This document shows, one piece after another, positions 1,310 to 50,989 of a stretch of 64,000 nucleotides of DNA. Position 1 is the stretch's first letter, and the number at the start of each line of letters is the position of its first letter. The notes beneath the pieces are model-generated. The model was not told the origin of the DNA, did no database searches, and saw only the letters and a list, made by a program, of their open reading frames with translations. The stretch covers positions 682,001-746,000 of the forward strand of contig JBLDXI010000016.1 in assembly GCA_047495785.1 (NCBI GenBank). Direction: 5' to 3'. Both the position numbers and the translations under genes were made by a program. Origin of the DNA: Lepidodermella squamata (Eukaryota; Animalia; Gastrotricha).

Positions 1310-1740
1310 TCAATTTTGCGAGTTCTTCACGAAAGCGTTGATGATTTTCTGCCAGCGCCTCTCCGACGACATGATGCGGCGAGCAAGCAGCTTGGCCCAA
1401 ATGTAGAACGGATGCGGCGATGCGTTGGCGCAAAGGCTCTTAGCATCATCGTTTGGAAGAATTTCGCGGCAAAGCTTCGCGGCGAGCAGGCGCTCGTTGT
1501 TCGACATTATTTTCAGCAATTTTGATGCAGCTACCAGCTCGCGTTTTGCCACTAGAATCCACACACGTCCTAAAGAAGAAAACTAATGCAATAAAAACAA
1601 CAAATACATAGGATGATAAACTAACGCGCAAGATAGTTTCGTAATCGGATGGTGGATTCGCCCCGTGAAAGGCCTTCGCCGCCACGGTCGCCCATCAGTG
1701 AGCCGATAAGCGTAACCAAAATTGTCCATCGAAAGCACAT
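1310..1740 (-). CDS. Unknown secreted basic protein, family member P1 (subtype alpha), 124 aa, 2 exons (1740-1626, 1569-1310)
   Basis: Spliced ORF MCFRWTILVTLIGSLMGDRGGEGLSRGESTIRLRNYLARRVWILVAKRELVAASKLL...CREILPNDDAKSLCANASPHPFYIWAKLLARRIMSSERRWQKIINAFVKNSQN. It has a 56-nt GT-AG phase-1 intron at the same position as its paralogues and TATAAA at 1772-1777. Confidence 0.85.
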
Positions 1741-2399
1741 TTTTAGTATTTTACAGTTACGGTTACTTAACTTTATAGCCTCCTAGGTATGTGCGCAACC
1801 AAAAGATGTTTGTTTCAAATCTATCATGACAAGAGCCGTCAAGCCGCGTATTTGATACGTCTATTAATTATTCGCTAAAATTTGGGCCCATCAGAGACTG
1901 ACAGTAATGTGTACACCTCATCTGGCTAATCATGTCCTAGTTTGACACTCCCTTCACATAGCAGCCAGGGTTTATGGCTGATACGATAAGTTCGTTATAA
2001 ATGGCTATCTTCCCCGTATAATTGACAGCTATGTCCGCATGCTTCTTGGAAGTTTGGCATATGCTGTCCATAAAATAGGTTAAGCCCGAATTAATGAGGA
2101 GTGTATGTGGTTAGCTTCCTTTAATATCTGTCCAAAATATCAAGTTTTCGAAATATATATCGCAGAACTGGATATCATGTTAATTTCCGCTATCGTTCTA
2201 GGCGCACTGTCCCAGACATGTGCTATACTTCAGAGTGCTCGACCCTTTCGAATTTCAAATCATATTTTTATTGTTGTTGTTCGCTACTGCTTGACTTGGA
2301 AGGGAAGGGACAAAATGATACGGTTCTTCGTATTTTCTTCATTAAAATTTTATAATATAATTTGTTATAATGGCTTTATTTATACTCCTTACGACTAAA

Positions 2400-2627
2400 C
2401 GTCTCTAACGGTTTCCCGTTTTGAAGGAGTGGGCATTTTACTGCCTAACACAGACACACAGGGAATCATGCGCACACACAGGCTTTGCATGTCCAGGTCC
2501 GGGAGCTGGGGCGAAGCGACTTGCACAAGGCCGCAACACTTTTTGGTGTTGCTCTGTGGGCAGCTTGAATCGAACGCACGACCTTCGTCATGATGAGGGG
2601 GCGCTCGATCCACTGCGCCACTGTGTT
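2400..2627 (-). mobile_element. tRNA-derived SINE, CORE-like
   Basis: Minus strand shows A box TGGCGCAGTGG (2620-2610) and B box GTTCGATTC (2575-2567), then CCTTGTGCAAGTCGCTT (2530-2514), resembling the CORE-SINE motif CCTTGGGCAAGTCACTT. There is no complete tRNA cloverleaf, and the 3' end is approximate. Confidence 0.7.
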
Positions 2628-3248
2628 TCATTAAAATTGTTGTCTGGTAATCATCAGTAAAGCAATGGTTTGCTAGCTATTCCGTAAGATTTTATTCGAT
2701 TAGCAGCAACAACTGGGGAAACGTCCCTTCCATTGTCCCTAAAAATCCGTTCTGCGAATGGTTTAATGTACCGAATGGTTTCAGTGCTCAGGAAAACGAC
2801 TCCTCCCATTCCTGTCTTTTGAAAATTTCGAGGGCCCCTCTGATGATCGCAAATTTCGGGCTGCTCGCTAAACCCCGTGAGAGCGGGAACAATTCGCACC
2901 ACTATATGATTTCCTCAAACAGCTTTGAACGCAGCGTGAGGATGATCAGCCTCGAATTCATATCGCATTCAAGATGATAGGAAAGGGGATTCGGACCAAT
3001 AGCAACCTGCTGAACATCGAATTTCCTCCGCTGTCAGTAGCATATTCTATTTGCTCAAAAGCTCCATTACCCTTAGTTTCGTGCGGACCCCAACATTAAT
3101 TGCGCAGTGGCACAAGTCCACTTTTACCCTCTGATTGTGCAATTAGTTTCGGGGGCCACACGAAGGCCGAAGGAGATCCGGAATTGAGCATTGAGCATTC
3201 TATTTAGCAACGGCCGGTGAAATTTCCCGAATGCAGTCCCTCACCTTG

Positions 3249-3420
3249 ATAGCCTCCTAAAAGTTACGAACTAAAGTCTGTTTGTTTCAATTATATCGTG
3301 ACAGGAGCTGTCAAAATACATAATTGAAAGGTCTACACTGCGTCCACTTTACTCCTGGTAATTTGGGTCCATCATCAATCAATTGTTTGACTCTAGACTG
3401 TAATGGGTACACATGCTGTT
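3249..3420 (-). promoter_or_regulatory. Orphan copy of the small-protein promoter with no adjoining coding exon
   Basis: Aligns by eye to 1775-1920 (atagcctccta...tgtttgtttcaa...tgacaggagctgtca...aatttggg.ccatca...gtaatg.gtacac). No family exon is found on its downstream side. Confidence 0.6.
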
Positions 3421-4332
3421 CACCGGCCCATCTCATCCGCATCGCATATTTCTTAGGAAGAGAAGTAATTGCTGTCCACAAAAGCCCGAGGTTACGAGAG
3501 CGTATTTTATGAAAGCAACTTCTCAAAAGTTTGATTGACTGAAAACGTTGATCAACAAAATCGTTTTAGGTACGAGGAATTACCTAAAACCAGTGTTTTT
3601 TTAAGGGGTTTACGTTTAAAACGTAGGCAACGTTGACAAAAATTGGACGGTTTTTTATGGGGATGCCATTCAGAGAAGGGAACATCAAAGTAAAATGAAA
3701 ATGCATGTCTGAGATCCAACCAAGAGCTGACCTTAGGTCATACATGTCGGATTCGCCCGCGTTCAAAACCAGGCGCATTTCCCGGTTTTTTCCTGTTCAG
3801 GAAAGGATGACAGACTTTCGGATCATATAATTAACCCAAATCTCGCGGAAATTGATTTTCTTCCGATATTTTCTCAACAATAGTATATCATCAAATTTAT
3901 TCAGAATCTTTAACAGAGACTTCAATTGACGATACAATTTCGATGACGCCGTGCAGTTCGACTTCACCAGCGCATTAGAATTCAGACTTCAGACCAAAAA
4001 GTAACAAAAATGAGCAGGCTTGTAACATAGGAGTGTTTACATTTGATGCTACGATTCAGGCGAAGCTTACAGTTTAGGTAACATAACCAGTAAAATAGCA
4101 AAACATAACGGTAACAACAGATTAACCCTAAAACGATCATCGGAAATCATGTGATAAATATGTGGAGAAACGAGGAAATGGCATCCACGTTATTACTGGC
4201 GACGACTTCCATTTAAAATATCTTCGTTCTTCTTTTTGTCCGTTTAAAAGTACATTTTATGATAGCGAAACCGTGAGTGAGCAGAACCGCTGCTTCATAG
4301 ATAAATATTTCTTGTTATCGAGCACATGCGTG

Positions 4333-4765
4333 CTACAAGGGTGTTCCTTTGAAGGCATTTGTAATCTGCAGCCATCGCCGCTCCGGGGACATGATGTGGC
4401 GAACAAGCTGTTTAGCCCAAATGTAGAACGGGTGCGGCGAGGCGTTGGCGCACAAGCTTTTCATGTCATCGCCTGGCACAATTTGCCGACAGTGGTCAAT
4501 GGCTATAAGGCGCTCGTTTTTCGACATCAATTTTATCAGCCTAGAAGCAGCTTTCACCTGACCCTTCAAAATTAACATCTGCACGCGACCTAATAACAAA
4601 TTCATAAACATACCAAACTATTAATATAGAACGAGTATTTAACATACTTGCGAGACATTCACGTAACCCAAGTTTAGCATCATATTGCGTTGGAGCATCC
4701 TCTATGTTACTATCGCTTATAAGCGGACCAACGAGCGTAAAGAAAACTGTCAATCGAATGCGCAT
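4333..4765 (-). CDS. Unknown secreted basic protein P2 (subtype beta), 124 aa, 2 exons (4765-4648, 4589-4333)
   Basis: MRIRLTVFFTLVGPLISDSNIEDAPTQYDAKLGLRECLAS|RVQMLILKGQVKAASRL...HCRQIVPGDDMKSLCANASPHPFYIWAKQLVRHIMSPERRW; 58-nt phase-1 GT-AG intron. Confidence 0.85.
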
Positions 4766-5559
4766 TTTTAAATATCAGAGAATGATCAAAATTAAATGAG
4801 AAAACTATTCGCTTAGTTGATGCCATTTTGAATGACGTCACTTTATCATAGGAAGGTCGGAAAATTATTCTCCTACGATCTGAAACCAGGTTATTGTTGA
4901 CAGCTGTTGTATTTAATGCAATTTTCAATTTCAATTTTGCGCTACCTGATTTTTACGTGCCAATGTTGATTAATGTTTAACGGAATACTTTTCATTATTC
5001 CTACTTGTGTTTTATTCTTTCGATTGATTTCGCCCTAGATTGCGATAATTGATGGTTACAAGTGTTTTGTATTGAAAAATTAAGAGGATACGTGCTAAAT
5101 ATGTCCGAACCTTCATTCAGGTACACTGAAATGTCCAATTTTCCGAAGTTCTTGGGCTTGCGAAAACTTCGACTTCTATGCGGGACTCCAGCTAGAGGAA
5201 GGTTGAAAAAACACTTATGGGACCCTTTGGTTTCTTCGGCTAGGTGCTAGAAAGCATCATAGCTCCCGGATCCTACTTAAAGACTCATTGATTCTTTGCA
5301 GCTTTTTATTTGTTTGCGTTACTTAAAAGAACCTATAAAAGCTTGAATATTAGCGCTCATCAAGCGATTGTTCCGTGCTAATTAATACCACCTCATTAGC
5401 TTGCTTGTGCGGGCCTTTTACTTTTTATCCTAAATCATTATCAGATCTTCGCGGCAATTAAACTAAGAGCATCAAAGTCTGGTTTGAAATGATTTTGAAA
5501 ATAATTATTATTAGCCTTGAATAAATACAAATTTGTCACTTGTTGAGTAGGAGAGTCAC

Positions 5560-7917
5560 TCAAACAGCATTAGCCCTAATCCAGTCGATATAGGCAGCAA
5601 CTCGCGTGTAAACCGAGTACATAAGCCCGCAACGGGTGAAACCGAAAGAAGTTATGCCGCAAAGCTTGTAGTAACCCTGCGAGCCCGCCATCATCAACGG
5701 ACCGCCAGAATCACCCTGACATGTGCTGACCCCAGAGGTTTCATAACCTTTAAAACAAAATGAAACCTTCAATTAATCTATAAGTGTCATGGCTGAAATT
5801 GACGAACCTGCGCACATCATAGTGTCCTGGATTAAGCCGGCTGAAAACGTCGCCGAGCATGTGTTCTTACTAACAATTGGAATGATGGCGTATCGTAAAA
5901 CGTCACTCAATCCACCCAAGTAATTCGTCAGACCCCAGCCTGAAAGACAAGAAATCAGGTGAAAATTTACCACATAGCACTTAATAAGACAGCTCTAACC
6001 GGCCACGGTGGCCAATGTTCCAGCTTCGCAATCATCTGAGGCTGATGCTGGCAAGCAGATTTTCTGGACATTCCACTTCGAAAAATCAAGAGCCGCTGCA
6101 TGAAAAGGGTTTAATATACTTCTGAGCCCGATTTAGCAGCAACCTTACCAGGAAGCTTTAATAGCGCGATGTCGTTTATGTAGGTCGCTGCGTTGTGAGC
6201 TGGGTGCGGCTTGCAGATTGTAGTTGACACGGAATATTCGCCGCTCTCGTCTCCTGCTGTCTGATTGTGTTCCCCGACGTAAATTATAGCGGACCTTTTT
6301 AATTGAATCACTTTTTGAAAATTGATAACAATCGCAACTTGATGGATTACGAGAAAGTTGTCCCGGCTAATGAAACGCAATGGGCGGCTGTCAGAACGTA
6401 TCTGCAAAAAGGTTTTACCAAGTAGTGAATTAAAATTGTAAAAATACCTGTCACTGATTATGCTCCCTGTGCATCCTAAGGCCGTTCCATTGGAAAATAT
6501 TGTCAGAATTCGAACCGTCCTAAAAATAAAAGCGCGTGATTGAAGGTTCCAATGTTAAAAGTTCTCCTTAACCAGGGGAATTGATTAGGAAGAGCTATAG
6601 AACCTGCAACAATACCAGATCCAGGCGCATCCCTGCTGTTGTAGTACTTGGAATGACCACAAGTACTCGCGACATTTGTTGGTGATGGTGTCGAAGGAAT
6701 TTGCTGGTTGATAACGTTTTGTATCCAAGGCAAGGCCATACACAGACGTGAGCTGTAATTATGCGAGAATATATGTGAAAATTTCAAGTAGCGCAGCAAC
6801 TTACAACACTGAATCGTAAAGAGTGGAGCCAGACTTGTATCCGTAGGAAAACGCGCCACACAGCGTGTAGCGTGTTCCGTTGAACACCGTCAATCCTGCC
6901 CCGACGTCGTAAGACCAAGGCAGGTATCCATTAGAGTTGGTAGCGCAAAGCTTCGTGTCTGTCACTGGCGCATCTGACGAGCTGTATTGAGCCTGACAAC
7001 TAGCTCTGTTCGAGATTTTCAACGTTGAACTCTTCAAAGTTGGCGATTGCGAAGTAGAGGAAACCGATGTTGAACCCCATCCTGAGAGAGATCAATTCTT
7101 GGTAAAAATAATTTCGTGTTACGACTGCTAGAACATACCAACAACAGAGGCTGTGGTTGACTCTATATTACACGAATCCGAACAGGTAGTTGGGAGGCAA
7201 ATAGATTTGACAGCCCAGCTTCGGCTGAAATCTATGGCGGCCGAAAGCTTGATGATCGCAAAATCGAAATTACGCTTGGATAGCTCAAACATCGGATGCC
7301 ACGAATAGTCCTCAGCCGTTATCGAAAATTCAGTAGACTCGACGATTTGAGAGTCTAGATCTCCAAAATACGCTCGTATATGCGATGCAAAAGCAAAGGA
7401 ATTCTGAGAAAATAAAGGACTTTTGACGAGAATTAACTGAGTGAACTGCGTTATTTTTATGGCCTTACTATAAAGAGGAGGCTGTGGTCAAAAGATATCT
7501 GTCGCCGATGATTGTTGCGCTGAAGTTGAAGGAATCCTGCATATTCGGAGTCTTGACAACCAGACGGGCATTCCACGGATGCCTGACGGAGGGACATTTC
7601 TATTACCACTTTTTTTAAACCAATTTAACTCACGCGTAAAGAGGAGCATCCACTCCGCCGATTATTCCTATCCCGCTTCGACTCGAATTATTGAAGATAA
7701 AAGAATTTAATCCACAGTCTGTTGGTATCTTAGGCGGTGTGGTGGTAGTTACGGGCGGAGCCAGAGTGGTAGAAGGAGTTGTAACCGTTGTCGACGCTTG
7801 AACTCGAAGGCCTGGCCCGTAGTTTTCTATTATAGAACTCGGCAAAGGGGGGCATGCTTGGCTTCGATAGGCCCCAAGGACTGCGAGAATTCCGAGAAAA
7901 AGATTAGTTGGGAACAT
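5560..7917 (-). CDS. Secreted tandem S1 (chymotrypsin-fold) protease, copy B: inactive domain 1 + active domain 2, 11 exons
   Basis: Signal peptide, Thr/Pro linker, then IIGG. Domain 1 has TTASS in place of TAAHC and YDVGAG in place of GDSGG. Domain 2 has IVAG, LTAAHC, NDIALLKL and STCQGDSGGPL. Ten short GT-AG introns keep the frame open to TGA at 5560-5562. Confidence 0.92.
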
Positions 7918-8442
7918 TTTATCAAGAGAATCAACATCGAAATTCTCAAGAATACCCAGCCTATATATATCTGAGCAAAGCCAGTTGGCTTCTCTGTTCA
8001 GTCGCACATCCTGTGAAATTTGCCACCTTCCTTTTTTAATTTCTATTGTAACTTCTGACGGAGACGTGCGATAGCGTGGGGCGGCTTAGGTCACGCACAT
8101 ATTTTTTCCGTTAGGTATCTGGATTTAGGTTCCGGTCATTTGTTTTTTCAACTGCCTCGACCTGGTGTCACGCCTATTCATTACTGAAAACTATGTTCCT
8201 TTGTTCGGTTCGGACGTTACTATATCCTATTTCTGATGCAAAGAAAGTGTAAATAGGCGGATAAAGGAAATCCTCTAAAACGTATCCTGACATTAGATCA
8301 CAAGTTAATCACTGCATATTTAGCTAATTTATTAGGTACAGTAGAAAGAACATTTTAGCTCAAAAGACATGGAAAATTTAACAGGCTGAAGTTTGAGCTC
8401 AAATTTTTGAGAATTTTTGAGAATTTAGAATGAGCTAATGCG

Positions 8443-8790
8443 CTACGAGCCTAATTTTGCTTGCGAGTTGTTCGCGAAAGCGTTAATAATTTTCTGCCAA
8501 TGCCTCTCCGAAGACATGATACGGCGGGCAAGCAGATTAGCCCAAATGTGGAACGGATGCGGCGATGCGTTGGCGGAAAGGCTCTGAACGTCATCGTTCG
8601 GAAGTATTTCGCGGCCAAGTTCAGCGACCAACAGCCACTCATTGTTCGACATCAACCTCAGCAGTTTGGATGCTGCTGCCAGCTCGCATTTTGCCACCAA
8701 AATCAACACACGCCCTTAAGAAAAAATGAATATAATATTCAAACAATTATGCGTAGAAAGATGAACTAACGTGCGAGATATTTGCACCAT
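8443..8790 (-). pseudogene. Small basic protein P3 (alpha), 5'-deleted pseudogene
   Basis: Exon 2 and the intron (8770-8715) are intact, but exon 1 is reduced to ...CKYLA. ATG, signal peptide and TATA are gone, with promoter sequence (aaatctatcatgaca, ~8826) joined almost directly. Both conserved Cys are substituted (LGREILP, SLSANASP). Confidence 0.8.
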
Positions 8791-9859
8791 GATTTATTTA
8801 CCAAATGATTTATGTTGTTTGTTGCAAATCTATCATGACAACTTACCTGCGTCTTCTAATTATTTGCTATAATTGGGGCCCATAAGCAACCTGAAGTTGA
8901 CATCAACGAGTACACCTCATTCAGTTCGTCATGTCATTCGTCATTGATTGGCGTTCTTTTCTAAGCTGCCCTCCTCTGTGCGAAATGGCTTCTAAATAAT
9001 AAGTAATTTACTGAGAAACCAGGGTTGATGAATATATGGAGACGGTAACTTCATTATAAATGGCTGAAAAACTTGTTAATAAAAGTCAAAAGAACGGATA
9101 GGACCGGATTAATCACAACATCCTAAGATCGTGAACTCTTGCGCTTCCGAACTTTTGGTTCGCGTCAAGTAGAGGTTCCCTCTTGCTATAGATAAAGTTG
9201 TGTTGAACTTCAAGTCCTGTTCGCCCCTTACATTAACGTATATTTTTCGAAAAATAGCAGATGGCAGTACCGAAATCCGAAATATTAGAAATATCTTGCG
9301 GCGCGCTGCCGGATGTTTCCGCTTCATAGTCGCCTGCTCTATCGGCATTGCTTGCTACTGTCTACTCTGGATTCACCACTTTTGGGGTTTGCCTCTTATG
9401 TGGCCTGCCGTCTCAAGCTTACAAATCAAACGACTCTTCTTTCGCTCATCCTGAAAGTGGCATCGAAATCTCAAGTTGTGAAAAATATGTTTTGTTCATT
9501 CTTTTAACGGCTTGGTCCAACAAACGGTAAATATGTGTTTTTACATAATCAGTATCGTCATTGAGAACGCTTCTTAAAATCAAACGAGGATTTGGAGGAT
9601 TTCAAAAACTGCCACGTTGTTTACAATTACTCACCATGGCGTGCAAATCTACATTTTGACTGCATAATGTAAATCTTGGCAAACTCATCCGAGTCCTGTT
9701 GAAGGCGTTATTTATCTTTTAAGAATCAACGATAGGTTGAGGAATATCTCATATCTCACATTTTCAAGAAATCAAGTAAATAACTTTAGTAGAACGCAAC
9801 GTCACTTCGGCTAGTCAAGCGAGGCAATTCTCTCACTTGAGATTCCTATTCCGCTTACA

Positions 9860-10050
9860 ATCTTGATTCTCTGGAAAGCATTGCTGATCTTCTACCAATG
9901 GCGTTCTGATGCGGCGAACCAACAGCTTGGCCCAAATGTAGAATGGGTGCGGTGAGGAATTTTTGCAAAGGCTTTTCTTGTCAGTGATTGGAAGAAATTC
10001 CCGGCAGCGTTTAAGAGCTATTAGGTGCTCGTTTTTCGACTATAGTCATC
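9860..10050 (-). pseudogene. Small basic protein P4 (beta), exon-2 fragment
   Basis: Matches P7 exon 2 (SKNEHLIALK..CR..LPITD.KSLC..SSPHPFYIWAKLLVRR). It has an 8-nt frameshifting deletion near 9910 and no 5' part. Confidence 0.8.
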
Positions 10051-10349
10051 AACTGAGCCGCGGAAGAAAATTCATTTTGCCAACGAATCATAACGGCTGA
10101 AAGAATGAAACGCAAGTTGTACATGCATGGACAAAAACAAGTGGACTTGTGGTGTGAGCTTGGAATGTATGATTAACGTCGTTTTCAAGATTGCTTCGCA
10201 CTTTCGACGTGCCAGTATTGATTGATCTGATTAAGCAAACAGAATCTCTTGCGCAAAACGACGCAGGTCAGCTCTGACCACGATTACTGTTTAGCGCTAT
10301 CATTCCTAAAGTTTATCGACAACAAGAAACAAGATATTTAATATTCCGG

Positions 10350-10796
10350 CTAGAAATTTAAGATGGAAATATGACAAGTATACGTGGTGAATTTGTCTGA
10401 AACTGGGCATACACGCAAGCGACGTTCTGACGACATGATGTGGCGAACAAGCAGCCTTGCCCAGATGTAGAAAGGCTGGGGCGAGGCGTTAGCGCTCGCA
10501 TCGCCAGTTGGTAGAATCTTCTGGCAGTCAATATGCGAAATCGTCCGTTCGTTTGCCGACATGAGCCGCAGCAATCTAACGGCAGCATTAAGCCGGCGTT
10601 TGAGAATCAAGTTCCAAACGCGCCCTGAGTCATGAAGGTAATGAAATAGCTTTAGTTTTCGAATTTGGAATATTAACATACTGGCAAGGTATGACCTCAG
10701 GCCCACAATTGGTTCAACGTTCGACGAACCAGCTTCATTGCTCTCGCCTATCAGCGTGCCGACAAGCGTAACAAAAACTGTCAATCCGAGGCACAT
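10350..10796 (-). CDS. Small basic protein P5 (gamma), altered copy with a new C-terminus
   Basis: MCLGLTVFVTLVGTLIGESNEAGSSNVEPIVGLRSYLA|RVWNLILKRRLNAAVRLL... It lacks the RLC tripeptide (second Cys), and after ERR it reads into former downstream sequence (matching 16223-16252). It may be non-functional. Confidence 0.65.
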   Translation of the reverse strand: MCLGLTVFVTLVGTLIGESNEAGSSNVEPIVGLRSYLASMLIFQIRKLKLFHYLHDSGRVWNLILKRRLNAAVRLLRLMSANERTISHIDCQKILPTGDASANASPQPFYIWARLLVRHIMSSERRLRVCPVSDKFTTYTCHISILNF

Positions 10797-11300
10797 TATT
10801 TTTCTGCTCACTGGAACGTGCGGCAGTGACTAAAGGCAGAGCTTACTGACATTTGTCAATACACCCGACGCACCACTGTTTTTGCGGTGTGCGTGTATTT
10901 TAAAGTTGCACTACTGTCATTAAAAAATGCATTCAAGCTATAGAACCCTCACTTTATGCGTTGCCGCCTCAATTACATAAGAAATTGTATGGAATCAAAG
11001 CAGTACTTTTCCCGTTCGCTGTAACCGCATCGCGGATACAATAATTCATGAGCATTAACATGAGCTTATTGACTCATTGATTACTTGCACCTATTTATTT
11101 GTATGTGTTAGTAATAGGACCCTATGAAAGCTTGAATATTAGCGCTTGTCAAGCGTTTATTGTGTTGATAATTGATAACATTGATTTGACCTATGGTCCA
11201 ACTCATTAGCTTGCTTATACGGAATTTTCCAAGTTAAAATATCATCAGATCTTCACGGCTATGAAATTAACTAAGAGCATCGAAATCCTATCCATACAGC

Positions 11301-13653
11301 TCAAACAGCATTTGCCTTAATCCAGTCGATATGGGAAGCAACTCGCGTGAAAACTGAGTATTTGAGCCCGCAACGGATGTAGCCGAAAGAAGTTACGCCG
11401 CAAAGCTTGTAGTAACCCTGTGAACCCGCCATCATCAACGGCCCGCCAGAATCACCCTGACATGTGCTGGCCCCAGAGGTTTCATCACCTTTGAAGCAAA
11501 TTAAAGCCTTGAATTAATATAAGTCGAGGCTGAAACTGAACTTGACGAACCTGCGCACATCATAGTGTCCTTAATTACGCCGCTAGGGAACGCCGACGAA
11601 CACGTGCTCGTACTAACAATGGGCATGGTGGCGTATCGTAAAACGTCAGTCATTCCACCGAAGAAATTCGTCAGACCCCAGCCTGAAAGACAAGGCAAAA
11701 GGTGAAAATCCCACATATATGAAGGACGCCTCTAACCTGCCGTGGTGGCCAATGTTCCAACTCCACAATCATCTGAGGCTGATGCAGGCAAACAGATTTT
11801 CTGAACATTCCACTTTGAGAAATCAAGAGCGGCTGCGTGAAAAAGGGTTTTCTAAACTTCCGAGCCTGATTTGATAGGTATCTTACCAGGAAGCTTTAAT
11901 AACGCGAGGTCGTTTACGTAGGTCGCTGCGTTGTATGATGGGTGCGGCTTGCAGATTGTAGTTGAAACGGAATATTCGCCACTCTCGGCCGTATTTGTCC
12001 GATTGTGTTCCCCGACGTAAATAACAGCGGACCTTTATAATTAAGTCACTTTTTGAAAACGCGAAACAAAACTTGATGGATTACGAGAAAGTTTTCCCGG
12101 CTGCTACAACACAATGGGCGGCTGTTAGAACGTATCTGCGAAACATTATCTAAGGGAAAGTTAATTTAAGGTTGGAAAAATACCTGTCACTGATTATGCT
12201 CCCAGTGCACCATGAGGACGTTCCATCAGAAAAGGATATCAGAATTCGAACAGTCCTACATTAATAAAAACATTTGATTCAAGGCTCAAATGTAACTTTC
12301 TCTCTAACCATGGGAATTGATTGGGAAGAGCTATAGAACCTGCAACAATACCGGAGCCAGGCGCATCCCTGCTGTTGTAATACTTGGAATGGCCACAAGT
12401 ACTCGCCACATTTGTTGGTGATGGTGTCGAAGGAATTTGCTGGTTGATAACGTTTTGTATCCAAGGCAAGGCCATACACAGACGTGAGCTGTAATTATGC
12501 GAGAATATATGTGAAAATTTCAAGTAGTGCAGCAACTTACAACACTGAATCGAAATAATAAGAAGTGGATCCAGAATCGTATACGTAGGATAACGCGCCA
12601 CATAGCGTGTAACGTGTTCCGTTGAAAACCGTCAATCCTGCCCCGACGTCGTACGCCCAAGGGACGTTTCCGTTAGAGTTGGTAGCGCAAAGCTTCGCGT
12701 CTGTCACTGGAGCAGTTGTAGAGCTGTATTGAGCCTGACAACTAGCTCTATTCGAAATTTTCAACGTCGTACTCTTCAAAGTTGGTGATCTCGAAGACGA
12801 GGAAACCGATGTTGAACCCCAGCCTGATCGAGAGATAAATTGAAAAAGGTCCACGCCTCGAGAGCTAGAACGTACCAACAAGAGACGCCGAGGTCGACTC
12901 TGTGTTACACGGATCTGAACATGAGGTTGGAAGGCAGATAGATTTGACAGCCCAACTTTTGCTGAAATCAATAGCAGAGGAAAGCTTGATGATGGCAAAA
13001 TCGTAATTCCGACTGGTTAGATCAAACTGCGGATGCCACGTGTAGTCCTCAGCCGTTATCGAGAATTCAGTGGACTCGACGATTTGAGAGTTAACATCTC
13101 CGAAATACGCTCGAATATGCGATGGAAAATTATTGGAGTTCTGATAAAATAAAGCGCTTTTGACGAAAATTAACTGAGAGTGAACTGGGTTGTTTTTATG
13201 GTCTTACTATAAAGGGGTGGCTGTTGTCAAAAGATATCTGTCGCCGATGATTGTTGCGCTCAAATTGTAGGAATCCTGCATACTCGGTGTCTTGATTACC
13301 AGACGGGCATTCCACGGATGTCTGAGTAATGAGCCTATCAATTAGTTTTACCTTCAATGAACCAATTGAACTCACGCGTAAAGAGGAGCATCCACCCCGC
13401 CAAGTATTCCTATCCCACTTCCACTCTTATTATTAAAGATGAAAGAATTTATTCCACATTCTGTTGAGGGCTTAGGTGTTGTGGTGGTAGTTATGGACGG
13501 AGTGGTAGTAGGGGGATTAATCGTTGTCGAGGCTTGAACTCGAAGGCCTGGCCCGTTGTTGTCTGTGATAGAGCTCTGCACAGTGGAGCATGCTTGGCTT
13601 CGATAGGCCCCAAGGGCTGCGAGAATTCCGAGAACAAACATAGTTGCGAACAT
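11301..13653 (-). CDS. Secreted tandem S1 protease, copy C: inactive domain 1 + active domain 2, 11 exons
   Basis: Same exon structure as copy B. Domain 1 has TTATP and YDVGAG; domain 2 has IVAG, LTAAHC, NDLALLKL and STCQGDSGGPL. Stop at 11301-11303. Confidence 0.92.
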
Positions 13654-14159
13654 TGTATCAAAAAAAGAATCAGCTTCAAACTCTTCGAACTCGCATTTAT
13701 GAGCGAAACCGGGGTAGTTTCCTTTTTTGGTTGCACATCCTGTGATAATTGCTACCTTTCTTTTTCACTTTCCATAGGATATCCTAACGGAGGCGTGTCA
13801 GCGTGGGGTGCTCATACTTTTTTATTTCCAACCGTTAGGTAGTTGTGGGTGTAGCTTCCAGCTCTTACGTTTTTTCAAATGCCACGGTTTGGCGTCACGT
13901 TAATTGTAGCAAACTATGTAGCAAACTTTTGTTTTGTTCGGATTGTTGTGGCTATGCTCGATGGAAAACAAGTGTGTCTCAGCGGGAAACGGATGTTAGC
14001 AAAGCCTCAAAAACTTAGAGAAAAAGTTCAACCCACATTATTCCGTCAGGTTACGTCAATATTACATGAAAATAAAGTTGGATAAGTTTGGAAATATCAG
14101 ACCGCAGCTCAAATGCTCACAAATCCACTGTAGAGAGTACTTGAGCATTGTGAGCCTAT

Positions 14160-14570
14160 TCAAGCTTTCGATTTTTTCACGAAAGCGTTAAAGTTTTTTA
14201 GCCAACGCCTCAACGACGACCGACGCGACATGCTACCGTTAGCATTATCGTTGAATACTCGGATTTAGGCTTGTTTACATCCGTTTCAAGGCGACGGATG
14301 ACAATAAGTACAAAGTGGTTTTATTAGCGTGAATGAAAAGGCAAAAACAAAAGACTTTTCACTTGCCACCTCTCGCCTTCAAACTATCGCAAACATCTCT
14401 AAATCCGAGTTATTCAACGACACGCTAACGATACGGCGAGCAAGCAGCTTAGCCCAAATGTAGAACGGATGTGGCGTTCGGAAGAATTTTGCGGCAAAGT
14501 TTCGTGGATAGCAGGCACTCATTATTCGACATCAACATCAATTACAGCAATTTGGATGCAGCTACCAGGC
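14160..14570 (-). pseudogene. Small basic protein P6 (alpha), disrupted exon-2 remnant
   Basis: Degraded AASKLL...REILPN / PHPFYIWAKLLARRI / RRW..NAFVK sequence with an internal deletion and a MITE inserted at a TA. Confidence 0.8.
14236..14431. mobile_element. 196-bp MITE, Tc1/mariner-like
   Basis: ~32-bp imperfect terminal inverted repeats (cgttagcattatcgttgaatactcggatttag / ctaaatccgagttattcaacgacacgctaacg). TA is duplicated on both sides (14234-35, 14432-33), and paralogue P3 has a single TA here (gacatgaTAcggcg). Confidence 0.85.
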
Positions 14571-15165
14571 AGGCTGCTTCCGCTTCTCACAGCAGCCACC
14601 GTCTCTATCTTAGAGGAAGTGAATAATCGCCCGTGAATAATCATCTTGAGAGCAGCATCAAAATCTCAGGCCGTCAAAACCTTTCACAGACCCTTTTTTC
14701 ACTTGTTAACTTTTCATATTTTCAAAAAATGACTGTACAGAACTGACTACTCGGATCGCCTTGAATCTTTCAACATTAAATTCTGCCGGTTCGGGGGCCA
14801 AACTCGGATGCATGGGAAAATCGAGAGAATCGGTATTTTCATGTCGGATGATTTTAGTCACATTTTTGGTTGTCGGATGAAATAAGACATTGGTCGGATG
14901 AAAAAAGTCACACCCTGTTCAACTGATGGTGAGAAAGTGAAGCGAAAAAATGCTCATTGAGCAAAACAGCGTTGTTGTTTTATCATTTTAAAATATGGCA
15001 AGTTCATCCGAGTTCTGTTGTCTGTTCATCTTCAGCTAGTGGGGTCAAGGAATAGCTGAGAGTTAATCTTAGGCTGCGGAATGTCGAGAAAATTAAAAGC
15101 TCAAGTTAAGCGGATCTTGACCTCGACTATTCAAGCGAAATGATTCAGACAACCAGTGTTCCCGA

Positions 15166-15601
15166 TCAGCTTGCAATCTCGGTACTCTTGAAAGCGTTGC
15201 TGATCTTCTGCCAACGTCGCTCTGATGACATGATGCGTCGAACAAGCAGCTTGGCCCAAATGTAGAATGGGTGCGGCGATGCGTTTTCGCAAAGGCTTTT
15301 CATGTCAGTGATGGGTAGAATTTGCCGGCAGTGCTTAAGAGCTATAAGGTGCTCGTTTTTCGACATCAACCCAAGAATCCTAGAAGCAGCTTTCACCTTG
15401 CGCCTCAAAATTAACATCTGCACGCGATCTGGGAGAATTTCATGTGAAATCTCAAATAAGAAATTTAAAACAAAGCTTTAACAAACTTGCGAGGTATTTC
15501 TGCAAGCCAACTGTTGCAACATATTGCGATAGAGAGTCGTCATCACGGTCGCTCAACAGCGATCCCACCAGTGTAATAAAAATGACCAATCTAAACCACA
15601 T
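15166..15601 (-). CDS. Unknown secreted basic protein P7 (beta), 125 aa, 2 exons (15601-15487, 15428-15166)
   Basis: MWFRLVIFITLVGSLLSDRDDDSLSQYVATVGLQKYLAN|RVQMLILRRKVKAASRILGL...HCRQILPITDMKSLCENASPHPFYIWAKLLVRRIMSSERRWQKISNAF; TATAAA about 30 nt upstream of the ATG. Confidence 0.87.
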
Positions 15602-17300
15602 TTTGCAAATTATGGACTCGGTTCCTAAACTTTATAGCCGTAAGGGCCTAATCATATATCAAATCTATCCTGACAGGAGCTGTCGAGTCACGTAATTGAT
15701 TTGTTTCCTGATTACTCTTCTGCTTAATTTTTGGGTCAATAAGTTATTGATAATGATTTAAGCGTCCTAGTCTGAACGGCCCACACAATTATCACCTCTG
15801 ATGCTAGTGACGAGTGACGGGGCAGTCAAAATTAATGGCATTGATTAGGAGTATATTATACGCGGCAATTTCTGAGGTTTTATTGAAAACGGGATTGGCA
15901 TATCTCAGGAGGCGCGGCCAAGCTGTCCACGAAACACACGTAAGTACGTCCGATCTTGCGAGAGATCTTTGACTCATTCTATCGGGTGTTGGCTTAGAAT
16001 TTTGTTTAATGTCGTTTTCGAGGTTGTTACGCACTTTTGACGTGACAGTAGTGATTAGTGATTAAGCAGACAGAAACTCCGGTAAAACGACGTAGGTCTG
16101 CTCTGCCCATGAGTAATGTTTTGCGCTATCATTCAGTTACGTTGATAGACAAAAATAAAAAGATAGTTAATAGTTACTATTCAGGCTAGAAAGGCTTAAA
16201 GATGCTGAAAAGAGGACAGGGATACGTGGTGAATTTGTCTGAAACTGGGCATCAACGCTTCATTTAATTCAACTATGTTGCTCCCGGACCCGCATAAAAG
16301 TTGTGAGATTTCAACTGTTTCCGATTAATTATGCGCGCAAAGCATCTATTTCTAGATCAAAACATCCATGAGGTCTTTTGCTAGTCGCAATCATAGAGTA
16401 TTCACTGCTAATTTTCGTGCTAGGCGCAATTGGTGACAAAAATTATGTATATCGAAAACCCCTGTCATAACTGATTTTTTCATGCCATAAAACTACGTGG
16501 ACAACGTGGAATTACGTGGTATAATCAACCCCAATTAATGTGACTAGAAAGTCCGCTCTGATTTTTTTTCCCCTACCGTATTAACTGAATTATTACCACG
16601 CCAAACCGAGAGGCAAAGCTGAAGTCACAACAGGCCATAAATTTAAGAAGAAAGTGGCAGGGAGAAGTGGCAGGGAGAAACGTGCTCTAATGTCAATTTA
16701 GGAACTGGAAACTGGAATTCAAAAGCAAAGATCGGCGGTGGATTAATATGATTAAAAATGGATTAGAAAGCATGCATGTATATCTTGATTCCATTAGGAG
16801 CCAAGCCTCAAGTAAGCAGCCTTGCGTAGCTTCATTTCTGCGGCTGCTCTCTTATAGACACCTGCCGCAATTTGACCAATGTCGGTGGAAGGCTGAAAAA
16901 ACACCTCAGTTCCCGCATCCTACTTCGCACACTGGATCGGCATATGCGCGGAATTGACCTATTTGAGGCCTGATATATCATTTCGAATGACCTGAATTCC
17001 GACTTTTTAACGAAGCTGATGACTAACCTTTTTGGCAGTACGGTAATGCTAAGCCGTTACTACGAAGACTTGATTCCACATGGCTGGTACTTCATTTGGA
17101 CTGGTAAAACCCTAGCGATTCATTCTTTTTTGTCTTTATAGAGTAAAAGAGAGATACCTCTTTTGTTTCGAGGGCAATTTACCACTACGGTTGAGGAATA
17201 TAAAAGGATGTTCAAGAAAATTGCAGAAAAATGAGCACAAAGTCACTTCGACTACTGATACTACTGAGTCACATAGTTGAGATTCCCGTTCAGCTTGCAA

Positions 17301-17738
17301 TCACTGAACTTTGGCGTTTCTCTTGAAGGCGTTGCTGATCTTCTGCCAACGTCGTTCTGAAGACATGATGTTGCGAACAAGCAGCCTGGCCCAGATGTAG
17401 AAAGGCTGAGGCGAGGCGTTAGCGCAGAGTCTGCTCGCATCGTCAGTTGGTAAAATCTTCTGGCAGTCAATAGATGAAATTGTCCGTTCGTTTACCGACA
17501 TCAGCCTCAGCAGTCTAACGGCAGCATTTAGCCGACGCGTGAGAATCAAGTTCCAAACGCGCTCTATAAGTGATGAAAGTGATGGATCAGCTTCAGTTTA
17601 TAGAATATAAAATAGTAACATACTGGCAAGGTATGACCTCAGGCCCACAATAGGTTCAACGTTCGTTAGCCCGGCTTCTTTGGTTTCGCCTATCAGCGAG
17701 CCGACAAGCGTAACAAAAACTGTCAATCGAATGCACAT
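17301..17738 (-). CDS. Unknown secreted basic protein P8 (gamma), 125 aa, 2 exons (17738-17624, 17563-17301)
   Basis: MCIRLTVFVTLVGSLIGETKEAGLTNVEPIVGLRSYLAK|RVWNLILTRRLNAAVRLLRL...DCQKILPTDDASRLCANASPQPFYIWARLLVRNIMSSERRWQKISNAFKRNAKVQ. Confidence 0.87.
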
Positions 17739-18413: not shown

Positions 18414-20007
18414 ATGACTTCCGAAAAGCTCGACTTTTATGCAACCCTTGAAGCTGTTAAAAATGCGACGCTGCCAGCTCGCTCCTTGTTCTACCTTGTA
18501 ACCCCAGCTGAGTCATCACCAGCAAGGATTGAAGATGTTCCTGATTTCATCACAGCGAGCTTCCCGTACTTCATTACAATGGTCGCAATGGAGGTCGCTG
18601 CTTCGATTTTTCTCCAAAAGAAATCCTATCAATGGAACGATATGCTAACTTCAGTATCGGCCGGTTTGTTCTCAAGAGTTTTCGAGTAAGACTCCATTTG
18701 ACGTTACTTTCTCTAAGTACTTTATTCCATCTGTTTTACCGCAGCTTATTTCCAAAGAGTATAGATTTAGCTGGGTACCTATACATCTGGAACAACTGGC
18801 GACTAATTGATATGCCGAGTGACTCGATTTGGACCTGGATTTTCTGCATGTTGGCCTTCGATCTGGGGTATTATTGCTTTCACAGAGCTGCGCATGGTAA
18901 GAGAGCATGTCTATGGCCATCCCATTACCAATTTTCGAAATTCTATTAGAAATAAACTTCTTATGGGCATTTCACCAAACACATCATAGCTCGGAGTACT
19001 ACAACTTATCGACCGCTTTGAGGCAGCCTTTGATAGCTAAATGGGGAGCTTTCGTGAGTCTAATCACCTAACCTTAATAATTGTAACTATGCTATTCTGC
19101 TTAGATCTTCTACCTGCCGATAGCATTTTTTGTTCCGCCATCGATTTACCTGGTCCACATGCAATTGAACCTGTTATATCAGTTCTGGATTCATACCGAA
19201 CTCATCGGCAATATTGGCCCTCTGGAGTTGGTTTTGAACACCGCAAGTCACCACCGAGTACACCATGGTCGTAATCCTTACTGCATCGATAAGAATTACG
19301 CCGGTTTTCTCATCATCTGGGATCGTCTTTTCGGAACTTTCGAGGCTGAACGTCAGGAGGAAAAAGTCCACTACGGTCTTATCCACAATATCAAAGATTT
19401 CGATGCTCTTTGGGTTCAATTTTGCTCCGTAAAGGATATGTGGCGTAAATTTAGGGCTAATTCTAAATCGACCAAGTATCACGGGTTGGATAAGGTTAAG
19501 AACTGTTTGAAGTCAATATTCTACGGTCCTGGCTGGTTTAGCAGGAAGCCGTACTTCCGCCTAGGAGATCCAGCCGACCTACCCCCGGTTGAACCTAATC
19601 CAAAAAGATGGGATCCTTATGTTCCTCTGTGGCAAAGCGTTTACGCAGGGGTTCATTTCCTTATCGCTACAGTCATTCATACAATAGGAACAGAGAAGAC
19701 CCGATCAATGCCGCAGATCGCTGTTATGTTAGCAGCTTTCACGATTTTGACCGTAATGTCCGTCGGCAACATTTTCAACCGCAAGAGGCTGGCGAAGCAT
19801 TTTGAGATTGCCCGATGCGCTGTCGTGATTGCCGGAGCTAAACATGTTCTTTCATCGCTTGGCATGACTGCTCTTATCACACCGATGCAAGTTATCTTTG
19901 GTGTTTCCGCAATTTTGTGGTTGTTTGCGGAAAATAATGTTGAAGCTAAAATCCCTGAAGCCGCTGAAACGAAACCGGTTAAAAAAGACGAAGCAAAGGC
20001 GCAGTAA
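18414..20007 (+). CDS. AGMO: Alkylglycerol monooxygenase paralogue 1 (4 exons)
   Basis: Fatty-acid-hydroxylase His boxes [25 protein letters not shown] and [19 protein letters not shown], plus IFYGPGW; three ~55-nt introns. Confidence 0.93.
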
Positions 20008-21341: not shown

Positions 21342-22945
21342 ATGAGTTCGGAAAAATTCGACCTTTATCAAACGCTTGAAGTGGTGCGGAATGCAACACT
21401 GCCTGCTCGATCCTTGTTCTATTTGGTTACTCCAGCCGAATCATCACCGGCGAAACTTGAAGATGTTCCTGATTTCATCACAGCAAGTTTTCCCTACTTC
21501 ATCGCGATGGTCGCTATGGAAGTAGCTGCGTCGTTATTTCTACGAAAAAGAGTGTATCAGTGGAACGATATGCTGACTTCGGTTTCAGCCGGTTTATTTT
21601 CTAGAATATTCGAGTAAGGCTGGATTTAATAGGAATTTATGGACAATTCATTTTTCTTTTTTGTCAGCCTGTTTCCGAAGAGCTTAGACTTGGCTGGTTA
21701 TCTTTACATTTGGAGCAATTGGCGTCTCATCGAAATGCCAAGCGATTCGGTATGGACTTGGATATTCTGTATGCTGGCTTTCGATTTTTGCTTCTACGTG
21801 TTCCACAGAGCAGCACATGGTAATCTGATTTATAGTGGATCGTGGATCAAAAATAATCTTACCGATCCCTTTAATTTCAGAAATAAATTTCCTATGGGCC
21901 TTTCATCAAACGCATCATAGCTCAGAGTACTACAACTTGTCAACCGCTCTGAGGCAGCCTGTTATTGGAAAGTTCGCCACAGCGGTGAGTTTTTAATTTT
22001 AAAGCCATAGCTGAGTGATAAGAAAGTTGATTCTCGCAGATCTTTCATTTACCCATCGCGTTGTTTGTCCCACCCCCGATTTATCTGGTCCACGTTCAGC
22101 TTAACTTGCTATATCAGTTCTGGATTCATACTGAGCTCATTGGTAATCTTGGCCCTCTGGAGTTGGTTTTAAACACCGCAAGTCATCACCGAGTACACCA
22201 TGGCCGTAATCCTTACTGCATCGATAAGAATTACGCCGGTTTTCTCATCATCTGGGATCGTCTTTTCGGAACTTTCGAGGCTGAACGTCAGGAGGAAAAA
22301 GTCCACTACGGTCTTATCCACAATATCAAAGACTTTGACGCTATTTGGGTGCAGTTCTGCTCTTTCAAAGATATCTGGCGTAAATTTAGGGCTAACTTGA
22401 AGTCTACAAAGTATCACGGGCTGGACAAGGCGAAAAACTGTTTCAAGTCAATCTTCTATGGCCCAGGCTGGTTTAGCAGGAAACCGCAATATCGTCTCGG
22501 GGATCCAGCCGATTTGCCACCAGTTGAACCTAACCCGAAAAAGTGGGATCCTTACATTCCCTTCTGGCAAGCTTTTTACGCCGGTATACATTTCCTTATT
22601 GCGACATTGCTGCATTCCCTATCAACGGAAAAAGCAAAGAGAATGCCTCAGCTTGGGTACATACTAGCGGCGTTCACTGTTTTGACTGTAATGTCTGTTG
22701 GCAACATCTTCAACAGAAGTCGTCATGCGAAGCTGTTTGAAATCGCCCGATGCACTGCCGTGATTTATATGGGCCAATACGTTTTAACTTCGCTTGGACT
22801 AGCTGTATTGGTCACTCCTTTGCATGTGATCTTTGCTGTTTCACTGGTTATCTGGATTTTAGCGGAAAACAGCGTGGGGATGGAAAAATCTTATGATCCC
22901 GTTGAAACAAAACCCATGGACAGCCAACAGAAAAAAGCTAATTAA
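21342..22945 (+). CDS. AGMO: Alkylglycerol monooxygenase paralogue 2
   Basis: Same four-exon structure and intact His boxes as paralogue 1. Confidence 0.93.
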
Positions 22946-23241: not shown

Positions 23242-24742
23242 ATGATAAATAATTCAATGCTTGAAACAACGAGAAACTCGACGATGCCGTGGAGAGCTCT
23301 GTTCTATTTGATTGAGCCAAGTGAAACATATGGATTTTCAGTCAACGATACATCAGAATTAGCGATCGCCAGCACGAAATGCTTCTTACTAGCTACATTT
23401 GCTGAAATCGTCTACTCACATTTGAACGCTATGGACAATTATCGAATGCGAGATACGCTAACGTCATTCTCAGTGTTTTTACTATTTCATCTTCCAGAGT
23501 AAGTCAAAATCTCTCAGATAACTCGGATAAATCTATTTGCAATCATGTCTCTTAGTTTGATTCACAGAAATCCGGAGATGCTGGGTTATGAATGGATATG
23601 GAGTCATTCGAGGCTTTATGAATTTCATACAAACAATTACTGGACTTGGTTGGCTGTTTTCCTAATAGTAGATCTCTGGTACTACTTCTTCCACAAGCTT
23701 TGTCATGGTCAGTTACTCGATATTTCAATGTAGCCCCATTTCAAATTTTAATAATGTGATCAGGGTCCAACTTTCTAGGAGCATTTCACAACATAACCCA
23801 CAGCTCGAGCTGTTTCAATCTATCAACCGCCCTACGACAGTCCTATTTTGTGAAAATCACTTTCGCAGTAGGTTTCTGATTCATTTTTGTTTCGGGTGCG
23901 ATACTACTCCATTTTATTAGATTTCATGTTACCCCCTCGCCGTGTTAATCCCGCCGCCATTATTCGCTCTCCACTTTCAACTAAACTTCCTACGCCAACT
24001 GTGGCTACACTCTCGATTTATTCAAAACTTGGGCCCCATAGAATGGTTGTTCAATACTCCAAGCCATCATCGGATTCATCATTGCTGCAACAAAAACTTT
24101 GGCGGGTCTTTGATCATCTGGGACCGGCTTTTTTCAACATTTGCGAAGGAGATTGATAATGAACAACATAAAACCGGTCAAATGACGAATCCTGACCCTA
24201 TTGCACTAGCTACATACCCTTTCCTCCAAATTCTCAACATCAAGATGGATACCAGCAGCCGACCTAAGTCGATCAGCTCAGCTATACCGCTATGGGAGGG
24301 ATTTTATGGTTTTTTACACTTGATCATCGCGATTACGACCTTTTACAGAACCCTAGATATGCGTTTGAGTCCTTCTTCTTTCATTACCCTGGGCATAGCT
24401 TTCATAATCCTAGCAACTGTCTGCTCTGTCAGCTTTATTGTGGATCGCAAGCTGTGGTCTAAAGAAGTTGAAGTTTGCCGGCTGTTAGCCATTCTCGCCT
24501 TTTTGAAGCCTATTCTCAAGGCTCTGAAAGCAAAGCATTTAATCACATCGATTAGAATTATTTTCGTGCTTTCGCTTCTGCCATGGGCTTTGGCGGGATC
24601 GGAAAGGAACTCGAATCATGTTACTGCGCTGATGGAGGGCAAACTTGATACACCACGTCTAAGTAAACCCGACGATTCTAACAAGCAGCATGGTCGATTG
24701 AGTCGGTCTGCTAGCGCTTCTGAGCTTGCTACAAGAAAATAA
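23242..24742 (+). CDS. Divergent AGMO-like protein, probably catalytically impaired (paralogue 3)
   Basis: Same intron positions and an open frame, but the motifs read [26 protein letters not shown] and HHRIHHCCNKNFGG. It also has internal deletions and a longer polar C-tail. Confidence 0.8.
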
Positions 24743-49413: not shown

Positions 49414-50989
49414 ATGGCCTTTTACCGAACGCTTGAGGTTGTGAAGAACGCAACCCTACCAGCTCGAGCATTGTTTTACCTAGTGACGCCTGCAGAATCT
49501 TCGCCAGGAAAAATTGAAGATGTTCCCGATTTCATAACAGCGAGTTTCCCATACTTCATGGCTATGGTTGTAATGGAAGTAGCCACGTCGTTCTTCCTTC
49601 GAAAACACAGCTATCAATGGAACGATATGATGACTTCAGTTTCGTCCGGCTTGTTCTCCAGAATTGTTGAGTAAGATAGCATGGCAATTTCAAACATCCA
49701 GTATTTATACGTGATGTTTTCTCCAGTTTGTTCCCAAAAAGCATAGATTTAGCAGGTTATCTCTACGTTTGGAGCAACTGGCGGCTTATTGAAATGCCGA
49801 GCGATTCTACTTGGACATGGATTTTCTGCTTGCTTGCCTTTGATCTGGGTTATTATTGCTTCCACAGAGCTGCACATGGTACGTTAATTCATCTCATAAT
49901 TTCCAGTTTAATATCTATGTTTGGATCGAATTTTGCAGAGATCAGCTTTTTATGGCTTTTTCACCAAACTCACCATAGCTCGGAGTACTACAACTTGTCA
50001 ACAGCATTGAGGCATTCAGTGATTGCGAAATTTGCCATTGTTGTAAGTTTTTCGAAACAGCTGCATTTCTGCTATAAAACAAAGATGTTGGATAGATGTT
50101 TTACCTGCCCATTGCACTTTTCGTACCGCCTCCAATTTATCTGGTTCACATGCAACTGAACACACTTTATCAGTTCTGGATCCATACCGAGCTCGTCGGC
50201 AACCTTGGTCCGCTTGAGTTGGTCCTCAATACTGCCAGTCACCATCGAGTTCACCATGGCCGTAATCCTTACTGCATCGACAAAAACTACGCTGGTTTTC
50301 TCATCATCTGGGATCGTCTATTCGGCACTTTCGCAGCTGAACGTGAAGAGGAGAAAGTCCATTACGGCCTTATCCACAACATCAAAGACTTCGACGCTCT
50401 CTGGGTTCAGGTTTGCTCTATCAACGATATGTGGCGCAAGTTCAGGGCTAATTTGAGATCGACAAAGTATCACGGGTTGGATAAGGTGAAAAACTGCTTG
50501 AAATCAATATTCTATGGACCGGGTTGGTTTAGCAGGAAGCCGCACTTCCGCTTAGGAGATCCAGCTGACCTACCCCCAGTTGAGACGAACCCGAAAAGAT
50601 GGGACCCATACGTTCCAATGTGGCAAAGCGTCTACGCCGGAATGCATTTCCTTATCGCAACTGTGATTCATTCTCTTGCGACGCAGAAGAAAATGTCACA
50701 CATTGGTTTCATGGTAGCTGGTATGACAATTCTGACCGCTATGTCTGTCGGTTACATCTTCAATCGCAAGAAGCACGCCAAGATTTTCGAAATCGCTCGA
50801 TGCTGTGTCATGCTAGCCGTATCACCTTATGTACTTGGATTGATTGGAATGCCAGCTCTTGCAACTCCGCTGCAAGTGGTCTTCGTTCTTTCGGCGATAA
50901 TTTGGAGTTTTGCGGGTAGTAACCCTGATCTTAACGAAAGCTCTTCTGAGGGAGATCAAGTGAAACAAGACTCCAAGAAGGCGCATTGA
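49414..50989 (+). CDS. AGMO: Alkylglycerol monooxygenase paralogue 4
   Basis: Four exons; [43 protein letters not shown]. Confidence 0.93.

Follow-up and report, generated by a model that had tools for sequence, protein, structure and literature searches.

A row of small, similar genes on a contig from Lepidodermella squamata raises the question of what kind of protein these genes encode. The stretch analyzed here (contig JBLDXI010000016.1, positions 682,001 to 746,000; 64 kb in total, hereafter the window) carries the cluster at positions 1310-17738, with all family copies on the minus strand. A first-pass annotation had described an unrecognized family of secreted, strongly cationic helical proteins of ~124 residues. 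Our analysis establishes that the locus holds a lineage-restricted family of basic, helical, secreted-type proteins that are marked by one Cys pair and have no known relatives. What its members do can be answered more tentatively, and several functions have to be weighed against each other.

Using the two exons of one copy as query, tblastn recovered eight exon-2 copies in the window (E 1e-55 to 8e-07), all on the minus strand, and no family copies beyond 17.8 kb in the rest of the 64 kb. The matches span 1313-1567 (c1), 4336-4587 (c2), 8446-8712 (c3), 9871-10039 (c4b), 10419-10622 (c4), 14424-14562 (c5b), 15175-15426 (c5), and 17304-17561 (c6). The length of ~124 residues given for the family holds for four copies (c1, c2, c5, and c6, with 124-125 residues), but only these four of the eight are intact; c4 is an altered variant and c3, c4b, and c5b are dead. 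To build gene models, the DNA upstream of each copy was read and the frames were checked arithmetically. Exons were analyzed separately, protein lengths and charges were summed over exons, and the junction codon was read by eye. Exon 1 of c2, c4, c5, and c6 was recovered by tblastn, and that of c1 by eye with a frame check. All five resulting two-exon models (c1, c2, c4, c5, and c6) share a homologous phase-1 intron of 56-60 nt with canonical GT..AG borders. The models thus bear out the single conserved phase-1 intron that had been reported, and also the remark that the open reading frame track misses the signal-bearing exon, since exon 1 is separate.

The copies fall into three paralogue types, A, B, and C. 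Among the intact genes, c1 (type C, 124 residues; 1310..1740, minus strand) consists of exon 1 at 1740-1626, a 56-nt intron at 1625-1570 (GTTAGT..TAG), and exon 2 at 1569-1310 including the stop codon. The type-B gene c2 (124 residues; 4333..4765, minus) has exon 1 at 4765-4648, a 58-nt intron at 4647-4590, and exon 2 at 4589-4333, and carries an additional Cys in exon 1 (RECLA). Its type-B paralogue c5 (125 residues; 15166..15601, minus) comprises exon 1 at 15601-15487, a 58-nt intron, and exon 2 at 15428-15166, and the type-A gene c6 (125 residues; 17301..17738, minus), which is P8 of the first-pass annotation, comprises exon 1 at 17738-17624, a 60-nt intron, and exon 2 at 17563-17301. The altered type-A variant c4 (10350..10796, minus; exon 1 10796-10682, intron of 57 nt, exon 2 10624-10350) has lost its second Cys through a 9-nt deletion, and its final ~15 codons are swapped for unrelated sequence. 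The 57-nt intron of c4 is also open and in frame, so that the list of open reading frames gives a single 153-residue read-through frame (10350-10811, minus). This openness is probably due to chance; retention of the intron would still yield a protein. The type-C pseudogene c3 (8443..8712, minus) keeps an open exon-2 frame; exon 1 and promoter-proximal sequence are deleted, both Cys are replaced (by G and S), and conserved Y, K, and R residues are altered. The remaining two are fragments: c4b (type B; 9871..10039, minus) lacks the N-terminal third and shows a frameshift and a stop after ...VRRIRTP, and c5b (type C; 14424..14562, minus) has an in-frame stop, a frameshift, and no Cys loop.

The substitution pattern carries the claim that these are genes. 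The ratio of nonsynonymous to synonymous substitutions (dN/dS), a check named by the first-pass annotation, was calculated over 80 shared exon-2 codons by the Nei-Gojobori method. Pairwise values range from 0.11 to 0.27 at dS of 0.5 to more than 2 (saturation), which indicates purifying selection and hence real, constrained coding genes. Among the four intact copies, dN/dS is 0.08-0.13 in the C-terminal half and, where estimable, 0.21-0.51 in the N-terminal half. That the family is real, under constraint, of secreted type, and without known relatives is a conclusion that we hold with high confidence.

The encoded proteins have three parts. The exon 1 product starts M-x-[FIL]-R, with a basic residue at position 2-4, and continues into a signal-like segment of ~17 residues with ~12 hydrophobic residues (mean Kyte-Doolittle 1.9-2.8), in which position 17 is occupied by G or S; its assignment as a signal peptide is based on composition alone. 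A variable, neutral-to-acidic spacer of ~20 residues follows (two K/R against two to five D/E). The exon 2 product is 84-86 residues long, with 14-17 K/R against 5-6 D/E and a net charge of +9 to +12. Its two Cys, C33 and C46 in all intact copies, form the C-x12-C loop, which is followed by the near-invariant NASP[HQ]PFYIWA[KR]. The exon junction always carries an Arg (KR, RR, SR, or NR before V[WQ]), at which the precursor might be processed. The hydrophobic moment is highest, at 0.62-0.67, in the C-terminal helix. AlphaFold2, run twice on exon 2 with alignments of seven rows, returned all-helical models of low confidence (predicted local distance difference test, pLDDT, 62 and 68; predicted template modeling score, pTM, 0.46 and 0.32); in the second model, helices cover approximately residues 2-7, 11-23, 25-36, 40-47, and 52-80. 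On these points the first-pass annotation proved accurate. Its signal-like N-terminus and its cationic helical body both stand, at the level of composition and of low-confidence models, respectively, and its motif of C-x12-C followed by [AE]NASP[HQ]PFYIWA[KR].L.R.IMS.ERRW..I.NAF is found as described. The spacers that it quoted are those of c5 (DRDDDS) and c2 (DSNIED), and its count of 18 K/R against 5 D/E from RSYLAK onwards in P8 is reproduced in c6 (16 K/R and 5 D/E in exon 2, plus the R and K of RSYLAK).

Does the family belong to anything known? Pfam searches with exon 1 and exon 2 of the copies and with the three relatives described below gave nothing at E <=1 beyond sub-threshold noise, and PHROGs gave nothing relevant. 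PDB sequences gave no match in single-sequence or profile searches (best E 0.81), Foldseek against the PDB gave none at E <4 with the low-confidence exon-2 models, and a word-indexed protein search with exon 2 yielded zero candidates. Since the claim hinges on the absence of relatives, we also ran an exhaustive profile search over 1.84 billion protein representatives at E <=1e-3. It returned five matches, two of which (P0124 and P0125) are credible; the other three, P0121-P0123, are spurious repeat proteins in which the match is confined to a short stretch (e.g. TTFYIWAKD). A word search seeded from P0124 and P0125 added P0126. Viral contigs, prokaryotic genomes, and JGI metagenome contigs, the last also scanned with a relative as lead, gave pattern matches only, none of which was confirmed, and a full-text literature search for the motif strings found no paper that contains them. 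The family therefore remains as unrecognized as first described, with three unnamed distant relatives as its only credible kin.

Judged by sequence comparison, these three proteins are true homologues: in hhalign, the window profile matches P0125 and P0124 with a probability of 97% (E 4e-11 and 6e-11). All three are unnamed, intronless open reading frames in ENA metagenome assemblies from a single biosample, SAMN13674978 (loci L001 150-755, L002 970-1383, and L005 1502-1930), and P0125 and P0126 are tandem neighbors. Although their identity to the window copies is only ~22-32%, each joins a signal-like N-terminus and a spacer to a basic domain that contains C-x(8-9)-C-[SA]-N-[ATS]-S-x-x-P-F-[YF]-x-W-A-K. 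Compared to the window copies, they have longer spacers and a shorter Cys loop (8-9 rather than 12 residues), and P0124 and P0125 stop ~10 residues past the WAK helix, without the SSERRW..I.NAF tail. Nine columns (C, C, N, S, P, F, W, A, and I) are invariant across the seven sequences of window copies and relatives, and the signature C-x(8-12)-C-x-N-x-S-x-x-P-F-[YF]-x-W-A-[KR], located in a basic helical domain that follows a signal-like N-terminus, describes the family. The domains of the relatives carry net charges of +12, +12, and +8, and charge is thus kept at ~30% identity, where sequence is not. In P0124, the spacer holds 22 D/E against 10 K/R, including a poly-Asp run, which brings the isoelectric point of the mature protein to 7.0 and neutralizes the basic domain.

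The same biosample holds the best match to the alkylglycerol monooxygenase (AGMO) genes of the window (55% identity), and RPL5 encoded on the AGMO-bearing contig scores highest in the PDB with ribosomal L5 chains of vertebrates and insects. On this basis, the relatives probably belong to an uncultured animal with a distant relationship to the source organism of the window. Every two-exon model of the window contains the intron and none of the three relatives does, which implies that the phase-1 intron was gained or lost after the lineages split. In the metagenome animal, five tandem PHO4 (Na/Pi transporter) genes adjoin the AGMO gene (L003 6330-16089). A secreted Laminin_G_3 protein is encoded beside P0126 (L005 3888-5123), and the window has one as well (51496-52947); a synteny check found no detectable similarity between the two.

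As to function, we tentatively favor a secreted, folded basic domain that binds polyanionic surfaces and serves as a host-defense or a digestive/lytic factor, a possibility rather than an expectation. The protein would be secreted by means of the signal-like segment of exon 1, and its two Cys would form a disulfide that staples a helix-loop-helix, with the 12-residue loop preceding the start of the invariant N-x-S..PF[YF].WA[KR] helix. The folded domain would then act outside the cell through electrostatic binding, most likely to membranes or envelopes of microbes or prey, as an accessory factor in host defense or in digestion or lysis. Until it is removed, the spacer might shield the charge of the domain, and the conserved Arg at the exon junction lies where such removal might occur. 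An extracellular effector of this kind fits the layout of signal, neutral-to-acidic spacer, and basic amphipathic domain, the conserved charge, and the dynamics of duplication and decay; tandem duplication with copy loss is typical of effector families. The first-pass annotation had proposed a lineage-specific membrane-active protein or lysin, a reading that stays tentative and that the relatives favor, in that the charge of the basic domain is conserved at ~30% identity and the poly-Asp spacer of P0124 neutralizes the domain. That annotation made no mention of the decay of half the copies, of the co-duplication with serine-protease genes, or of the distant relatives. The lack of similarity to any family with another function means that no match contradicts an effector.

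Several observations weigh against this assignment. The Cys loop is acidic or neutral (PNDDAKSL and similar) and not basic, and hydrophobic moments of 0.62-0.67 are ordinary for packed amphipathic helices. The mature part, at ~107 residues, is far longer than typical helical antimicrobial peptides, and the low confidence of the models leaves both the fold and the disulfide putative. The strongest constraint (dN/dS ~0.1) falls on a specific Pro/aromatic motif, which suggests that a particular fold or binding partner, more than amphipathicity in general, is being maintained. Diversifying selection is common, if not universal, in antimicrobial and toxin families; pairwise dN/dS, an average that is insensitive at saturated dS, gives no sign of it on the mature part.

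Comparison with known systems places the family by kind rather than by descent. Cationic alpha-helical host-defense precursors, among them the taxonomically restricted Hydra arminins with their signal, anionic pro-piece, and cationic C-terminal part, have the same tripartite layout, which we find in the window copies (the signal by composition) and likewise in the relatives. Shared as well are the strongly positive C-terminal part, the amphipathic helices, the occurrence as a lineage-restricted, multi-copy tandem family and, in P0124, a poly-Asp pro-piece that neutralizes the basic domain. In contrast to these precursors, the basic part comprises ~85-107 residues here instead of 20-40, and the family has an invariant structured motif, a Cys pair, and purifying selection; there is no sequence homology. 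The resemblance is thus one in kind only, and the family is a taxonomically restricted group of small, secreted, cationic proteins.

Saposin-like proteins (NK-lysin, amoebapores, and caenopores; Pfam SapB) are likewise small, secreted, and all-helical, with ~80-100 residues and often with tandem genes in invertebrates. They are also membrane-active, as the present family may be. They have six Cys in three disulfides, however, as opposed to two Cys in the domain of all intact copies and of the three relatives, and neither a SapB profile match (Pfam, E <=1) nor a structural match (Foldseek against the PDB, E <4, low-confidence models) was obtained. The remark that two Cys are too few for a saposin fold is therefore consistent with our data. 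Anti-lipopolysaccharide factors (ALFs) of crustaceans and horseshoe crabs are closer in Cys number: they are cationic secreted proteins of ~100 residues, encoded by multigene families, in which two conserved Cys close one loop. The ALF loop, however, is a basic beta-hairpin of ~20 residues in an alpha/beta fold, whereas here the loop has 12 residues (8-9 in the relatives), is acidic or neutral, and belongs to a domain predicted to be all-helical. No ALF profile in Pfam matched.

The constraint on a single motif might also reflect a receptor epitope. The proteins could be secreted signaling ligands (helical cytokine-, hormone-, or pheromone-like) in which the C-loop and the NxS..PF[YF]xWAK helix contact a receptor and types A, B, and C are distinct ligands. 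We judge this unlikely on balance, yet it deserves consideration. Purifying selection is focused on one motif that is kept even in ~30%-identical relatives, the ~12-kDa precursor is of secreted type and has a spacer and one Cys pair, an Arg is conserved at the boundary of spacer and domain, and all three paralogue types are retained. On the other hand, we see no resemblance to known ligand families, such ligands seldom, though occasionally, carry a net charge of ~+10 to +11, amidation or a clear dibasic processing pattern is not common to all copies, and copy turnover is high, with pseudogenes present.

A different function might be sought in the genomic company of the family. Self-comparison of the region revealed a ~6-kb unit that is present three times in the order type A, type B, type C, and protease gene. 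Unit I contains c6, c5, c5b, and prot3; unit II contains c4, c4b, c3, and prot2; and unit III contains c2, c1, and prot1, with no type-A copy seen. Each type keeps at least one intact copy. The locus is a birth-and-death tandem array that arose from triplication of this unit, made up of three paralogue types and a secreted two-domain serine-protease gene. A promoter-like remnant at 3245-3335 (minus), 73% identical to the upstream region of c1 and containing a degenerate copy of the upstream element described below (3288-3303), is followed by no recognizable family member and may be a relic of a lost unit III copy. One of the co-duplicated protease genes is prot2 (5560..8007, minus), in which a signal peptide and a Thr/Pro-rich linker accompany two S1 domains. 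Its paralogues are prot3 (11304-13653, minus) and prot1 (1-1005), a partial gene that runs off the window, and the DNA of these three secreted protease genes is ~82% identical. All three encode this layout; the first S1 domain is without the catalytic His (LLTTASSL for TAAHC-type) and Ser (YDVGAG for GDSGGP), and the second has an intact His/Asp/Ser triad. A non-basic site (SGIG) precedes IIGG/ILGG. In the second domain, Ser rather than Asp lies at the bottom of the specificity pocket, and the residue at this position is well established as a guide to specificity in the S1 family; the active domain is thus not trypsin-like in specificity, and cleavage by it after the conserved Arg would not be expected.

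That the small proteins are functional partners of these proteases, as cofactor, inhibitor, substrate, or processed pro-protein, appears to us quite improbable. Every duplicated unit joins small genes and one protease gene on the same strand, and both products look secreted. Segmental duplication alone accounts for this linkage, however, and the pocket-base Ser speaks against cleavage of the small proteins after their conserved Arg. Pfam searches revealed no resemblance to known S1 inhibitor families, and no protease neighbor was found on the contigs of the relatives, which are short. Nor do the promoters connect the two gene types. An element, TGTCATGATAGATTTG, with a GATA core inside and followed by GGCTATAAAG, lies ~75 nt upstream of the c1 start codon (1816..1831, minus) and recurs at 8825-8840 (c3) and 15660-15675 (c5), while c6 is preceded by a weaker form; at up to three mismatches the element has seven matches in the window against 0.85 expected, and it was not found at the protease genes. 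The upstream regions of the family genes also contain TATAAAG-type boxes. Taken together, the link to the proteases is weak.

A reproductive or structural role, for instance as a gamete-coat dissolver like abalone lysin or as a basic matrix or adhesive component, we regard as more improbable still. Abalone sperm lysin and sp18 are secreted, highly basic, helical-bundle proteins of ~130 residues that work on an extracellular coat or on membranes without being enzymes; in size, secretion signal, strong positive charge, and prediction of a helical bundle, the present family resembles them in kind. However, lysin lacks a disulfide and is known for rapid evolution driven by strong positive selection, while selection on the present family is purifying. 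No lysin was matched in Pfam (Egg_lysin), among PDB sequences, or by Foldseek searches of solved structures with our low-confidence models. Finally, the notion that the copies are chance open reading frames or fragments of a decayed repeat or transposon, suggested by the fact that half of them are broken, is effectively refuted by dN/dS of 0.11-0.27 at dS of 0.5 to more than 2; the conserved phase and position of the intron with its canonical splice sites, the TATA-type promoters, and the independent relatives of the same architecture in another organism also speak against it. The probability that remains after the effector reading and these four alternatives we leave to functions not named here.

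Lineage-restricted (orphan) secreted families are common in invertebrate genomes, and the present one is unusually clean: it is clearly under selection, occurs in a second unsampled animal, and offers an easy bench target. The sequence signature and the gene models allow annotation where gene callers catch only the second exon. If the proteins are indeed effectors directed at membranes or envelopes, they would provide a new scaffold for animal host-defense or lytic proteins, namely a folded, all-helical basic domain with one disulfide and no relationship to saposins, defensins, or ALFs. They would also illustrate how a taxonomically restricted family can grow through segmental duplication that takes in secreted proteases as well. 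It is conceivable, if somewhat doubtful, that these proteins represent an undescribed fold or family of disulfide-stapled, cationic, helical secreted effectors confined to a poorly sampled animal lineage, with a new mode of action, either as a folded protein of ~12 kDa that targets membranes or envelopes and has no kinship with saposins, or as part of a novel ligand-receptor system.

The remainder of the window is in keeping with an invertebrate animal, with short spliceosomal introns, trypsin-fold secreted proteases, a Cys-loop channel gene, and AGMO paralogues; Rfam and tRNA scans gave no matches, and no part of it resembles human DNA. The long open reading frames of the window are absent from the protein collection searched. 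At least four AGMO paralogues lie in tandem or nearby (18414-20007, 22061-22945, 23942-24742, and 49728-50989), with FA_hydroxylase and AGMP_C domains. Their best database matches are just 39-55% identical, which indicates that the source organism has no close annotated relative; a top AGMO score from Darwinula was discounted as an artefact of a duplicated domain. The channel gene (26729-28288, minus) is a single exon encoding a 519-residue homologue of Cys-loop ligand-gated channels, in which a long Ser/Thr-rich, mucin-like N-terminal extension precedes the ligand-binding domain.

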